A stretch of 64,000 bases of DNA from Dimorphilus gyrociliatus. Lineage: Eukaryota; Animalia; Annelida. A program made the translations under genes and the position numbers. The stretch is from contig CAJFCJ010000014.1 in NCBI GenBank assembly GCA_904063045.1, positions 806,001-870,000 on the forward strand, in the 5' to 3' direction. The stretch's first letter is position 1. The number at the start of each line of letters is the position of its first letter. Shown here piece by piece: positions 3,945 to 11,466 of this stretch. Below the pieces are notes generated by a model. That model was not told where the DNA came from, made no database searches, and saw only the letters and a program-made list of their open reading frames with translations.

Positions 3945-4364
3945 TTTATTCGTTATTGATCCACTCTTAATTCAGTCTTAATAATAAATTACGAAATACA
4001 CTTATACACTTTGTTCAACAATCTCAAAGAAATTCAAAAGAGTTTTTGAAAATCTTCAAGCGTCTCTCAAGTTAAAAATACAATGTATAAGATACTTAAT
4101 ATTTCGATAATTTATTGTTATTCTTTCTCTAGCAATTTACAGCTCTTGACTATATATTTTTACACAATATTAGGTCTAAATTTAAGACACAACTCTGCAA
4201 TTAAAATGTTAGATGTAGAGTAAATTAAAGATAACAATTTTGTCTTAACCAAACATATACTGTTTCTTTTATGTATTATTTACAATAATGAATTCAAATT
4301 ATCAATTAACATACAAAAACATTTTATAAATGATCCGAAACAAATTTGCTTCTCTTCTCTCTAT

Positions 4365-7022
<2,658 letters not shown>

Positions 7023-7416
7023 GTTTCTCCTTTAGATTTATCGACTGAAATCAATTTAATCCGAATATCACTTATAAATCTACGAAATTAAATGGTATTC
7101 TGATGTTTTTTTCAAAACTTATGATCTTATAGCAACAAAGTGAATTAAAAGGGATCTGACTGCATAATTCTTATACTTCTACTATATATACTTTACTTAC
7201 CTTCAAAAAACGATTCAAAAACGTTTAACGTTAGAATGACGCTGCAAGCTGGCAATATGGCTGTTCAAAGTAAAAACATTTATTATTGGATATTTGAAGA
7301 ATATATTAGATTTTTAACCTATCACCAACGCGTTAATAAACAAGACTTTTTAAGATGGTAATCTATTCCATTTAAATGTAAAAATTTGAAAAAGGAATGA
7401 GCACCCCCCTATATAC

Positions 7417-7446
7417 TCACGTGACTATTAATGCATAGTCATGTGA
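7417..7446. promoter_or_regulatory. Paired bHLH-ZIP sites TCACGTGA + TCATGTGA upstream of DDX39
   Basis: TCACGTGA at 7417-7424 and TCATGTGA at 7439-7446, 22 bp start-to-start. The same arrangement recurs at 9386-9415. Confidence 0.55.
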
Positions 7447-7951
7447 TTTCTTTTGTAAACCTCTAAAGAATATTAAAAACTATTTCACTAGTTTATCTTA
7501 AACATAAATGTATTAGGCTTTATTTTACAAAAAGAATAATGAATGTTGTTCAGAGGAATTTTTTTGTGCACCTCTTGTTCTTTGTTCGAATAAAATAATA
7601 ACTGAATATTAATACAGTAAACTGACATAGAATTTAAGTTTAATTAAGTGTCCTAAAAGTAGGTCTACGTTTATCAAAGCCGGATTAGTACCATCTATAA
7701 TATACGACATATGAAATAATATGCAGTTACGTATCAAACAAAATGATAAACGAGTAGTTTGTTGTGTTTATAGCAAATACCATATTTACCATTCTCTTGT
7801 GTAAATGAACACTAGAGCTTCTTCATTAAAAGTTTTATTTCTTATAATAGTTGTACATTACAAAGTAAAATTAGTAACCTACAGTAAAAAAGCTGCAAAT
7901 AAAGACAAAAGATTCAATTTAAGATCATTTCCGTTTCTATTTTGTAATTAT

Positions 7952-8850
7952 TTATTCAAGTTTGTTATTGTATTTGATGTATTTTTCACATAGAGACTGA
8001 AGATCTTCTGTTATTACTGGGGTGAAGGACATAATTTGTTGCCGCTTAGGTATCAAACGAAGGATTTTCTGAATAGCCGCTCTAAAGTCTATTTAAGTCA
8101 TCTAACTATTGACAAAGTTAATTGTATTATTAATAATTTTACCTATTACTAAAAGAAGATCATGACATTCATCCAGTATAAAATGTTCTACGCTATGTAA
8201 ATGTAATATTCCTCTTTGAACAAGCGCCCACAAACGGCCAGGAGTTCCAACAACAATATGTGGTTTATTCTCCATAATTTTCTCTTCATCATTCTTCAAT
8301 GGTTTTCCGCCACATATATATGAAACCCGAATTCCATCCATAAACTTACAAAAGCGTTCGTATTCTCTGCTCACTTGAAATGCCAACTCTCTCGTATGAC
8401 ACAAAACTAGTATGGAAATCTAGTATTGATTTAAAATCATTTATATTTTTTTATACAATTGCAACATTCGAAATTGTTTTCCTACTTGATTATCTTTAGG
8501 ATTTAAGTGTTGAAGTGTTGATAAAATGTATATGATAGTTTTTCCCGTACCAGCTCTAGATGTACAGACGAAACTCTCTCCTGAAATTGCTTTAGGAATA
8601 AACTCCATCTGAACTGTACAAAATTATAGTTGTAATAGTTTAAAAACATATTATAGTATAGACGTTCGTTTGTACTTTTACTAGGGTATTTGATTTCTAA
8701 CTTATCCATTGCTTGTAGAAGTTCTGGTTTGAGATTAAACGCCGTAAAGTCCTTTTTCGTTGTCTGATTATCCTTTGCCTTCTGATTGCCTTGATGATCA
8801 TTTTGGGAATCTATGCAAATTTCTCCCATCTCAGTGTTGCTTTCAGCCAT
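7952..8850 (-). CDS. Truncated DDX39/UAP56 paralog encoding only the N-terminal RecA/DEAD domain (238 aa)
   Basis: Four exons (8676-8850, 8486-8613, 8143-8419, 7952-8088) splice without stops. Internal exons are 128 and 277 nt, identical to DDX39. Q motif, AGTGKT, HTRELA and GTPGR are present; DECD is DECH and SAT is TPV; stop follows YIKYNNKLE. Confidence 0.85.
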
Positions 8851-9382
8851 CTCTTTGGTAATTTAGGTTGTTGACGAATAGTTAGTCAGTTCAAGAATAA
8901 GTCTTTTAAAACTAGTAGAACTACTTTAAAGCGATAAACGTTTAACGAACGTTTTGATCAGGATTAATATCGCCATATTATTACGCAATCTATGAGAAAT
9001 ATTTATATTAAATCATGAGTCGGCAAGAAATATGTCAGTCAATTATCATACTAAATAAAATAAATAATTGTTACACTTTGGTCAATTCCTACTACCATTT
9101 AACGTTCTTTTTCTTGGAATGCATCACATGATGTATTTCATTGCATAAAACTTGTTTATAGCTTGTTATATAAAAAAAAGTAGATTAATTGGAAGTTTAA
9201 ATGGAATTAAATCAAGAAATGGGCCCAATTAATTTATTCGAACTAAATATAGCAAAGAGTTTAGATCTTTTAAGGTTTGTAAAGAGTTTTTGCTGATGTT
9301 ATTGTATTAATGTGGTTCCGTATTGTATTGATATAGCGTAGCGGAGAAATATTTGAAGAGGAGCAAGCTTTGCTGACGACAC

Positions 9383-9415
9383 AAGTCACGTGACTTAAGA
9401 TATCTTGTCATGTGA
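9383..9415. promoter_or_regulatory. Palindromic E-box (AAGTCACGTGACTT) plus TCATGTGA in the divergent promoter of the DDX39 paralog and bublin
   Basis: Perfect 14-bp palindrome at 9383-9396 (CLEAR/USF-type GTCACGTGAC) and an M-box-like TCATGTGA at 9408-9415, about 100 bp upstream of the bublin ATG. Confidence 0.6.
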
Positions 9416-9495
9416 TGAGAGTATGATAAATCCCCTTAGAAAAGCATATGGTTTATATTGAACAAGAAAACAGTCTTATTTTGAACCCCGAAATC

Positions 9496-10424
9496 ATGGA
9501 GCAATACGAAAATGGTATATTTAAAATCCATATATTTATTAAACATAAAATAGCAGTTTGATTTTAATTCTATAATCCTAAAATTTCTAGAATAACAAAT
9601 TAGTAGTTATAGTAATTTTTATTTGTTTTTTTTCTATTATGATATGATCTATTTTAATGAAAAAAAGGATAGAAAAACAAAAAAAAACAAACAAAATATA
9701 ATAAATTCTGACAATTCAATCCTTTTTGCCTAAGGACAGAGTATTTTGTCTATTATAATCACAGCACGACCATAATAACAAGGAATACACAACTCTGTCA
9801 ATTCCAGTAGAGTAATCCTATGAATAAACACATAGGGAAAAGGATAAAAGATTATAATGGAAAAACAGAGACATAAATGTAAATATTTCCAGCAGAAATG
9901 AAAGAGTATAATATCTCTTTTTCTATTTTAAAGAGGCTCTAGCTTTAGTCAACAAGAGTAGGATAAAATTTCAGATTGAAAATCTCTTTAATAATTAAAC
10001 CGGAAATGCACTCTTGAAAGACAGATAAACAATTATATTTACCATTTTCGCAACTTTTATTATGATCTGGCAGAGATTTATTAGTATAGTTTATTCTATT
10101 AATGGAAATAGTACAAATTGCAAATTAGGTCTTTATTCATTTTATGACTAGTAATGGAATAGCATTTAATGTTACTTACTTTACTTATCTGTAGAATACA
10201 ACGAATTAAATTCAACATTGGACGCCATTAATAATATGATGGATAATTTGGAGGCGAGAAACGACAATCTGGCTGACAAACTTCGAAGTCTATTAGATTC
10301 TAATAGGGCTATGAGAACTGAATTACAATCTCAAACAAATGAAAATAACACGCAATCTAATAATTCCGCAGAAAGATCAAATGAAAATGATAATCAAGAT
10401 TCGAATTCAACAAAGAAAAACTAG
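9496..10424 (+). CDS. BBLN: Bublin coiled-coil protein (UPF0184/C9orf16 family)
   Basis: Exon 9496-9514 (MEQYEN) plus exon 10195-10424 gives EYNELNSTLDAINNMMDNLEARNDNLADKLRSLLDSNRAMRTEL, matching the UPF0184 pattern (INSxLDxINSxLDxLExxNDxLxxxLxxLLxSNR). Confidence 0.85.
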
Positions 10425-11466
10425 AAGCAATAGCTTTTTCAGCTAAAAACACTATAATAATTTTTTCTTAGAAGAACAGAAGTGTTGTCTTGTAAATATA
10501 TATATATATATATATATATAAACATATTAGTATATATTTAATGTATATTAATAGAATTATTGTATATATCTATCGTTTTCTCCATTTCCTACTCTCTAGT
10601 CAATACATTGAAGAAGAAATAATTGAATATATGAAGAAGAGTTTAGATAGAATCGCTTAAGTTTCTAGGAAATGTCAAAAATATACAGGAACTCACGTTA
10701 ACAGTCTTATAATTAGTTGACGCCTTAATCTGATTAAAGAAATCACTAGAGAACAAACAAGTCTAAGAGCTTTATTTATAACTCCTATGAGATTTAGCCT
10801 AAGGAAAGATGACGTGGATATTGAAATAAAGCATGTAGTGTTTATATATAGTTTACATCCTTAATTTTGCCTTCTTTTCCATTACTTGCTCTTTCTAATT
10901 AGTATCAAGAATAACTCCTTACACCCTCTAAAACGTATAAAATTTTACTTTAAAGGTGTACAGGAAATATATAATTGTCATATAAACTCCCTCCACGTAT
11001 ACATTTATTGTAACTAGATTCTTATTCTTAGTTCTCCAATCCTTCGAACTAGGTTAATCAAAGGATTCCCCTTAATTACTATTTCGTCAATCTTGGTTAT
11101 TGTTTGTATGCAAATAAAAGAAAGAAGAACGGAGACGGGGGAGGTGAGGAGAAAGAAGAAGTGAGAGATTATTACACCTATCGAGTTCGGTTACTACTTG
11201 AGGTTAAGAGCATTTGTTACACATGTGTGAATTTTTTGCCCGTAAATCCGTCAGTTTCTTCTGATGCACTCCTAATCGATTTTACGGCTTTTCTCTCTTT
11301 TCTTTTATCTAAAATAAAATGAAAACAGTATCTTAAGAAGGTAAAGAACATTTATAAATTACAATAAATAGTGTTTTTTATTTGTAAAACAAATGTAATA
11401 GTTTACCTACCTCTTTTATGTTGCTTATATTAAACTTTATTAAACGTTAGTTCGTTTCTTATTGGT

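Follow-up and report, generated by a model that had tools for sequence, protein, structure and literature searches.

The stretch of DNA analysed here (the window) comprises 64,000 nucleotides from the miniature annelid Dimorphilus gyrociliatus. Its minus strand carries a complete UAP56/DDX39 gene and, 930 nt upstream on the same strand, a shortened copy of that gene. The coding sequence of the complete, or parental, gene (4364-7022) encodes 426 aa in seven coding exons (7022-6815, 6757-6630, 6567-6291, 6226-6108, 5150-4764, 4585-4438, and 4378-4364). Its first RecA domain (RecA1) is 80-88% identical to the UAP56 of cnidarians, arthropods, molluscs, and vertebrates. Intron 4 of the parent (5151-6107, minus strand) is 957 nt long in a genome whose median intron is 66 nt (PMC7854359). 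It lies at the boundary between RecA1 and the linker, between the residues FMQD and P, a position homologous to the end point of the copy. The parent also has a non-coding first exon (7201-~7260) and a 156-nt 5'-UTR intron (7045-7200) on the minus strand, as confirmed by a joint at 7044/7201 in its mRNA contig. A search of positions 4000-9600, covering parental intron 4 and the intergenic space, for snoRNAs or other structured RNAs in Rfam gave no match at E ≤ 0.1.

The copy consists of 238 codons and a stop in an uninterrupted frame. Its protein is a 100% match to the annotated D. gyrociliatus product DgyrCDS9846 (contig CAJFCJ010000014.1, assembly GCA_904063045.1), which carries the UniProt name 'RNA helicase'. 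The genome paper and its supplements make no mention of the copy, of UAP56, or of helicases; beyond its annotation in the public assembly, the gene has not been described.

The four coding exons measure 175, 128, 277, and 137 nt and are separated by GT..AG introns of 62, 66, and 54 nt. Exon 1 (8676-8850, minus strand, 175 nt) begins with an ATG at 8850 in the context AAAGAGATGG and codes for the first part of RecA1, preceded by an N-terminal tail that is diverged and disordered. Exon 2 (8486-8613, minus strand, 128 nt) encodes the Q-motif glutamine and Walker A (AGTGKT), and equals parental exon 2 in length and phase. Exon 3 (8143-8419, minus strand, 277 nt) encodes motif Ia (HTRELA), the GG doublet, motif Ib (TPGR), and a motif II that reads DECH, with the length and phase of parental exon 3 (6567-6291). 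Exon 4 (7952-8088, minus strand) has 119 nt homologous to parental exon 4, followed by 18 nt that encode NNKLE and the stop. In this last exon motif III is replaced (TPV), and the residues of the C-UBM site (R196, Q200, R204, and K229) are kept. At the position of the parental donor GTAAAT the copy has AATAAC, so that it reads on into NNKLE. Intron positions are identical in the two genes, with phases 1, 0, 1 in both and internal exons of 128 and 277 nt in both. An earlier note on this DNA had described these exon coordinates, intron positions, phases, and exon sizes, the open frame of 238 codons, the colinearity of exon 4, and the lost donor, and each of them was found in the sequence. Its estimate of ~57% identity over exon 3 agrees with the 59.6% over 89 aa given by tblastn.

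The protein matches the Pfam DEAD domain PF00270 (E = 3e-35) and has no match to PF00271. Its best solved relative is 1t6n, the isolated N-terminal domain of human UAP56 (E = 8e-61). Matches to UAP56/DDX39 chains reach E ~1e-60, versus ~1e-29 or weaker for DDX6 and eIF4A. Judged by its closest relatives and the gene structure in common, the copy belongs to the UAP56/DDX39 subfamily by descent. An origin as a processed (retro)pseudogene was ruled out by the three introns at parental positions.

Transcription of the copy and its surroundings

Expression was assessed in one public run stored as contigs, which was compared over positions 6800-9300, a range that leaves out parental exons 2-7. A single spliced contig of 1201 nt (7607-8989, minus strand) covers the copy in four pieces (7607-8088, 8143-8419, 8486-8613, and 8676-8989) with 0 mismatches. 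Its joints skip 54, 66, and 62 nt, bounded by CT..AC on the plus strand (GT..AG on the minus strand). The spliced junctions that had been proposed for checking (8676/8613, 8486/8419, and 8143/8088) are all present in this contig. Since all three introns are removed exactly as predicted, the run is derived from RNA. The contig gives the transcript a 5' UTR to at least 8989 and a 3' UTR to at least 7607. The copy is a separate transcribed gene with exactly the predicted splicing, and its open reading frame is presumably translated.

Beyond the stop codon the contig is unspliced for 345 nt and has no joint into the parent, so that no exons for the second RecA domain (RecA2) are added in this transcript. 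Downstream exons supplying RecA2, which would have overturned the reading of the gene as a half-helicase, are therefore absent from the transcript contig. The stop lies in the last exon, and the mRNA is thus no obvious target of NMD. A poly(A) site had been expected near 7836, but the contig runs past the proximal AATAAA (7839-7834, minus strand) to 7607. A candidate distal poly(A) signal (7634-7644, minus strand, with ATTAAA at 7644-7639) lies ~32 nt before the contig end, which as the end of a contig cannot prove the end of an RNA. A 16-codon upstream ORF (8926-8976, minus strand) would belong to the 5' UTR provided that transcription begins upstream of 8976. Contig word depth, which reflects expression only poorly, stands at 116 for the copy versus 2734 for the parental mRNA contig.

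On the opposite strand, a spliced piece is seen at 9096-9274 and from 9337-9366 onward; the intron between them (9275-9336) measures 62 nt and is of the GT..AG type. The piece begins ~100 nt from the 5' end of the copy, and its contig depth is 113.7 versus 116.4 for the copy. No gene is annotated there, and the piece looks like a divergent (bidirectional-promoter) neighbour of the copy. Further along the plus strand, an unannotated interval holds a 68-aa ORF (10218-10424) that is coiled-coil-like and rich in Asn, Asp, and Glu. It is possibly an exon of this spliced plus-strand transcript; a (TA)n run follows at ~10500-10525.

Divergence, age, and selection

Over RecA1 the copy is identical to its parent at 96 of 198 residues (48.5%), and the values against other metazoan UAP56 proteins (44-47.5%) are barely below this figure. 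Among 114 positions that are invariant in 19 metazoan UAP56 sequences, 51 are replaced in the copy. In a maximum-likelihood tree its terminal branch is ~70 times the median, and because this branch is so long the tree does not settle the placement of the copy; dating the duplication by phylogeny was given up for this reason. By the NG86 method, the comparison with the parent gives a dN of 0.37, a dS of 1.33 (pS 0.62), and a pairwise dN/dS of 0.28. Fourfold sites in conserved codons are identical in 17 of 31 cases, versus 30% expected at random, so that dS is not fully saturated and lies at ~0.7-1.3. By this synonymous distance of 0.7-1.3, the duplication is old. Introns 1 and 3 of the two genes are without detectable similarity, and intron 2 retains a weak trace with several gaps. 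In a search for the duplication breakpoints, the sequence downstream of the copy showed no detectable similarity to parental intron 4, and the regions upstream of the two genes showed none to each other.

Searches for an ortholog were made in two very large collections. Among 5.8 billion proteins, nothing was closer than generic UAP56 (≤48% full-length identity), and among 1.84 billion representative proteins the copy is its own representative, being known from one species. The representatives also include a protein of 1195 aa with UAP56-like sequence in two distinct places (E = 4e-109 to the copy, 41% identity); it may be a gene model that fuses tandem UAP56 genes of some other organism.

Several features of the coding sequence point to selection. 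Exons 2-4 have 0 indels in 525 nt relative to the parent, while all introns have changed length. Differences at codon positions 1, 2, and 3 number 68, 35, and 88 per 175 codons (position 1 versus 2, p = 1.7e-4), whereas an AT-biased neutral model expects near-equal change at positions 1 and 2. In AT-biased neutral simulations that start from the parent, 0.2% of runs at a raw divergence of 0.24 keep the 175 codons free of stops, and at 0.35 the share falls to 0.01%. Scored by BLOSUM62, the 90 replaced residues average +0.39, versus -0.56 to -0.62 under neutrality (sd ~0.17; maximum of 3000 runs +0.12). Averaged over the history of the copy lineage, dN/dS may be ~0.5-0.95, an imprecise figure that depends on the true dS, with nearly all dN assigned to the copy.

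Stops or frameshifts, a dN/dS of ~1, and equal change across codon positions, by which a pseudogene would be recognised, were not found in the copy. The claim of selection in the earlier note is upheld by the indel-free frame, the stop-free simulations, the codon-position pattern, and the conservative replacements. The dN/dS comparison with DDX39 that it had called for gave the pairwise value above, beside the higher lineage average. These values fit a burst of change in the copy, followed by selection that preserves the fold. We consider it quite likely that the copy is a selected, expressed protein consisting of RecA1 only.

Fold, catalysis, and partner surfaces

The AF2 model of the copy has a mean pLDDT of 82, with values of ~80-96 in residues 31-230 (the model is confident over 31-232) and below 50 in residues 1-30, which are predicted to be disordered. 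The best Foldseek matches are UAP56 RecA1 domains (1t6n_A: TM 0.92, rmsd 1.1 Å), and the extent of the copy is almost exactly that of the 1T6N construct, the crystal structure of the isolated human UAP56 N-terminal domain. Because that isolated domain is stable and the copy spans almost the same construct, a stable stand-alone domain is plausible.

The motifs have fared unequally. The copy retains Walker A (G-x-GKT), motif Ia (HTRELA), the GG doublet, motif Ib (TPGR), and, in motif II, the residues D-E. The residue equivalent to human F65 is Ile, DECD has become DECH, and SAT of motif III has become TPV (residues 216-218). In the N-terminal tail, the acidic character of the parent has given way to a polar/basic one. 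The retained AGTGKT and the changes in motifs II and III are as the earlier note had stated. Its statement that the Q motif is kept holds for P, S, and Q but not for the adenine-stacking aromatic (human F65); the replacement by Ile weakens the case for nucleotide binding by the copy. The second RecA domain is missing as claimed: the ORF stops five codons past the end of RecA1, and RecA2 (Helicase_C, with motifs IV, V, and VI) has no counterpart in the protein, in line with the lack of a PF00271 match.

DEAD-box proteins require both lobes and the arginines of motif VI to clamp RNA and to hydrolyse ATP, and their motif III (SAT) couples hydrolysis to clamping. A protein with neither RecA2 (motifs IV-VI, including the arginine finger) nor motif III is expected to have lost helicase catalysis. 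The copy is thus very probably a non-catalytic pseudo-helicase. Compared with UAP56/DDX39B/Sub2, the DEAD-box ATPase of TREX, its RecA1 is homologous (46% identity to the human protein) and superimposes at the rmsd given above. It differs in the missing RecA2 and motif III, in DECH, in the F65 to Ile change, and in TREX-2 contacts that are changed or deleted.

Partner surfaces were mapped with residue numbers taken from published mutagenesis (PMC12823420), with a primate sequence as the ruler. The resulting pattern is a post hoc reading of eight residues. In human UAP56, the site on RecA1 that receives the C-UBM of ALYREF comprises R208, Q212, R216, and K241 (PMC12823420). All four are kept in the copy (R196, Q200, R204, and K229), in a region (human 200-245) that is only 26% identical. 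The chance of such retention is p = 0.003 given the local identity and p = 0.04 given that of the whole domain, for four residues chosen post hoc. The RecA1 residues that face PCID2 of TREX-2 (D49, L51, Q78, and L81; PMC12823420) are all changed in the copy, to A, N, K, and S. NTD interface I (a TREX-2 contact, NTD residues 10-15) is degenerate and has lost its invariant Tyr, and NTD interface II (residues 39-44) falls in a 12-residue deletion. F336 and R339, which are critical for THO in human UAP56 (PMC12823420), the N-UBM site, and the SARNP site all lie in RecA2 and are absent from the copy. Among the THO, TREX-2, and ALYREF determinants of a functional TREX component, the copy has kept in sequence the C-UBM site alone. 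This pattern suggests that the copy could hold a C-UBM-type helix but not be loaded by THO or received by TREX-2.

Published data on the human protein bear on the strength of such binding. UAP56 truncated at the C terminus (beyond residue 381) loses its nuclear localisation, and REF binding in two-hybrid assays required residues 51-428 (PMC3142171). Single UBM peptides bind with mid-micromolar affinity only (PMC12823420). Together with an mRNA less abundant than that of the parent, these truncation and affinity data would make a 27-kDa RecA1 module a weak competitor. The human truncation data argue against strong ALYREF binding and against a potent decoy. A protein of 27 kDa could still reach nuclei by diffusion.

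Origin of the copy and its possible role

The simplest origin would be that the promoter and exons 1-4 were duplicated in tandem, with a breakpoint in the long intron 4, an event that would leave the downstream gene intact and the upstream copy truncated. Intron 4 makes up about one third of the length of the gene, and a breakpoint there therefore needs no special explanation. The earlier note had placed the end of the copy exactly at this intron, and the end is indeed found at the RecA1/linker boundary where intron 4 lies. On this account the truncated copy runs from exon 4 into the former intron and halts after five codons, so that it encodes a whole RecA1 domain able to fold by itself, with a new tail and without RecA2. 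It has evolved very fast, but under selection that preserves the fold. Pseudoenzyme paralogs and truncated tandem duplicates offer a parallel, in that an enzyme domain is selected after catalytic loss and an intronic breakpoint is the simplest origin. Word searches of open-access text found no published RecA1-only DEAD-box paralog kept by selection and no dominant-negative UAP56 N-domain.

The boundary at FMQD is also a frequent end point of other short UAP56 proteins. The best 119 other short UAP56-like proteins were collected by a length-limited search, which enriches for such entries. Fifty of the 119 end at most 60 residues past C[KR]KFMQD with a tail that begins with Val, and with ~20 more that have longer Val tails, ~70 of the 119 are read-throughs at FMQD. 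They come from primates, rodents, cattle, birds, turtles, fish, mosquitoes, a weevil, a limpet, mites, and many transcript contigs. A Val after FMQD corresponds to read-through of a phase-0 GT donor, so that the intron position is conserved across Metazoa and its retention is very widely recorded. These short entries were predicted from transcripts, and the proteins may not be made at all.

Two further observations concern the same boundary. The wide read-through suggests that the FMQD intron, 957 nt long in Dimorphilus, is ancient and regulated, as a detained intron or through a poison exon. In DDX39B isoforms annotated in cnidarians and vertebrates, FMQD is joined directly to V(V/I)IFVKSVQRC; these isoforms skip the exon(s) for the linker and the start of RecA2 and form a second recurrent variant there. 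In human erythroblasts, 'intron 6' of DDX39B is highly retained and carries a decoy exon (PMC6097662), and its equivalence to the intron between FMQD and P is putative.

The idea put forward in the earlier note, that the copy fixes the product of intron-4 retention as a gene of its own, is fair as regards structure, given these read-throughs, but not yet as regards function. The predicted product of retained-intron UAP56/DDX39B transcripts ends at the same boundary as the copy. These transcripts are, however, isoforms of the full gene with an unchanged RecA1, and they are probably detained in the nucleus or degraded as NMD substrates. The copy, in contrast, stands as a gene apart: it has a promoter of its own, has lost the donor, carries its stop in the terminal exon, and is strongly diverged in sequence. 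One might go further and suppose that a RecA1-only UAP56 is a physiological product of the retained FMQD intron across Metazoa, and that in Dimorphilus it was handed to a dedicated gene that shed the THO and TREX-2 surfaces and kept the C-UBM groove; we regard this as a long shot.

Overall, the best explanation, at a probability of roughly 0.6, is that the copy is an expressed, coding partial duplicate of UAP56/DDX39, a RecA1-only pseudo-helicase that acts by binding. From its sequence features, it most likely works as a binding module rather than as a catalyst. With its P-loop, motifs Ia and Ib, and C-UBM groove kept, it could bind the C-UBM-type helices that export adaptors carry, and it might also bind a nucleotide. 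Since the TREX-2 determinants are lost and those for THO are lacking, such binding would take place without entry into the cycle from THO to TREX-2. The copy would then act as a competitor or as a specialised partner of adaptors. We propose this C-UBM-binding mechanism tentatively, and at less than even odds.

In an alternative that we consider unlikely, but not negligible, the copy is a RecA1 protein that has become neofunctionalised for a task outside TREX and mRNA export, and its C-UBM residues are coincidental or reused for another ligand. Truncation would have freed the domain from nearly all constraints on UAP56, and it would have taken on a new partner or a nucleotide-binding role. The replacement of 51 of 114 invariant residues, the branch of ~70 times the median, the polar/basic tail, and the lost TREX-2 contacts all agree with such a course, and a dN of up to ~0.37 with conservative replacements fits a shift of function that was followed by constraint. 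It accounts less well for the retention of all four C-UBM-site residues in the most diverged part of the copy and for the fully kept motifs Ia, GG, and Ib, and no new domain or motif was detected in the protein.

That the copy is instead an unprocessed pseudogene, still transcribed but decaying after a partial duplication and without protein function, is improbable. A truncated, very fast-evolving gene with degraded catalytic motifs (DECH, TPV, and F65 to Ile), found in a single species, might be expected to be such a relic, and its lineage-averaged dN/dS may be near 1 if dS is ~0.7. Against this, a stop-free frame arises in at most 0.2% of neutral runs and no indel occurs in 525 nt. Codon position 1 has changed about twice as often as position 2, and the replacements are more conservative than neutral ones by more than 5 sd. 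All splice sites are intact and used, and the fold is predicted with confidence.

A role at the level of RNA or in cis, in which transcription upstream of and towards the parental promoter tunes UAP56 and the ORF is incidental, is very improbable. The arrangement as a same-strand tandem would allow it: the copy transcript ends at or beyond 7607, and the first exon of the parent lies near 7260-7201, ~350 nt from the contig end. UAP56 genes elsewhere are under post-transcriptional control via a retained intron (PMC6097662). Yet a role of the RNA alone leaves the conservative replacements, the codon-position pattern, and the kept frame unexplained. Moreover, the run has no contig depth at 7304-7555, between copy and parent, so that read-through from the copy into the parent is not evident. 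Least credible of all is a split helicase, in which the copy pairs in trans with a separate RecA2 or a rare isoform splices into parental exons 5-7: the P-loop, motifs Ia and Ib, and D-E in motif II remain, but the elements that couple to RecA2 (motif III and the final Asp of motif II) are lost, no donor exists at the homologous position, the contig is unspliced beyond the stop, and the window holds no Helicase_C-like sequence besides that of the parent.

UAP56 is an ATP-gated switch that hands mRNPs from TREX to TREX-2, and its partner surfaces have been dissected by mutagenesis only recently. The RecA1-only pseudo-helicase that we favour would offer a clean example of such a protein arising by partial duplication with an intronic breakpoint, in a genome known to be compact and to have lost genes. 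It would also give a handle on whether the widespread RecA1-only products of retained introns in DDX39 genes have a function as proteins. If the copy keeps the C-UBM groove but has lost the other surfaces, it would represent an evolutionary experiment on the capacities of an isolated RecA1 lobe. If, in addition, the physiological product of the retained intron was indeed handed to a dedicated gene, the copy would be a natural separation-of-function allele of a central mRNA-export ATPase.
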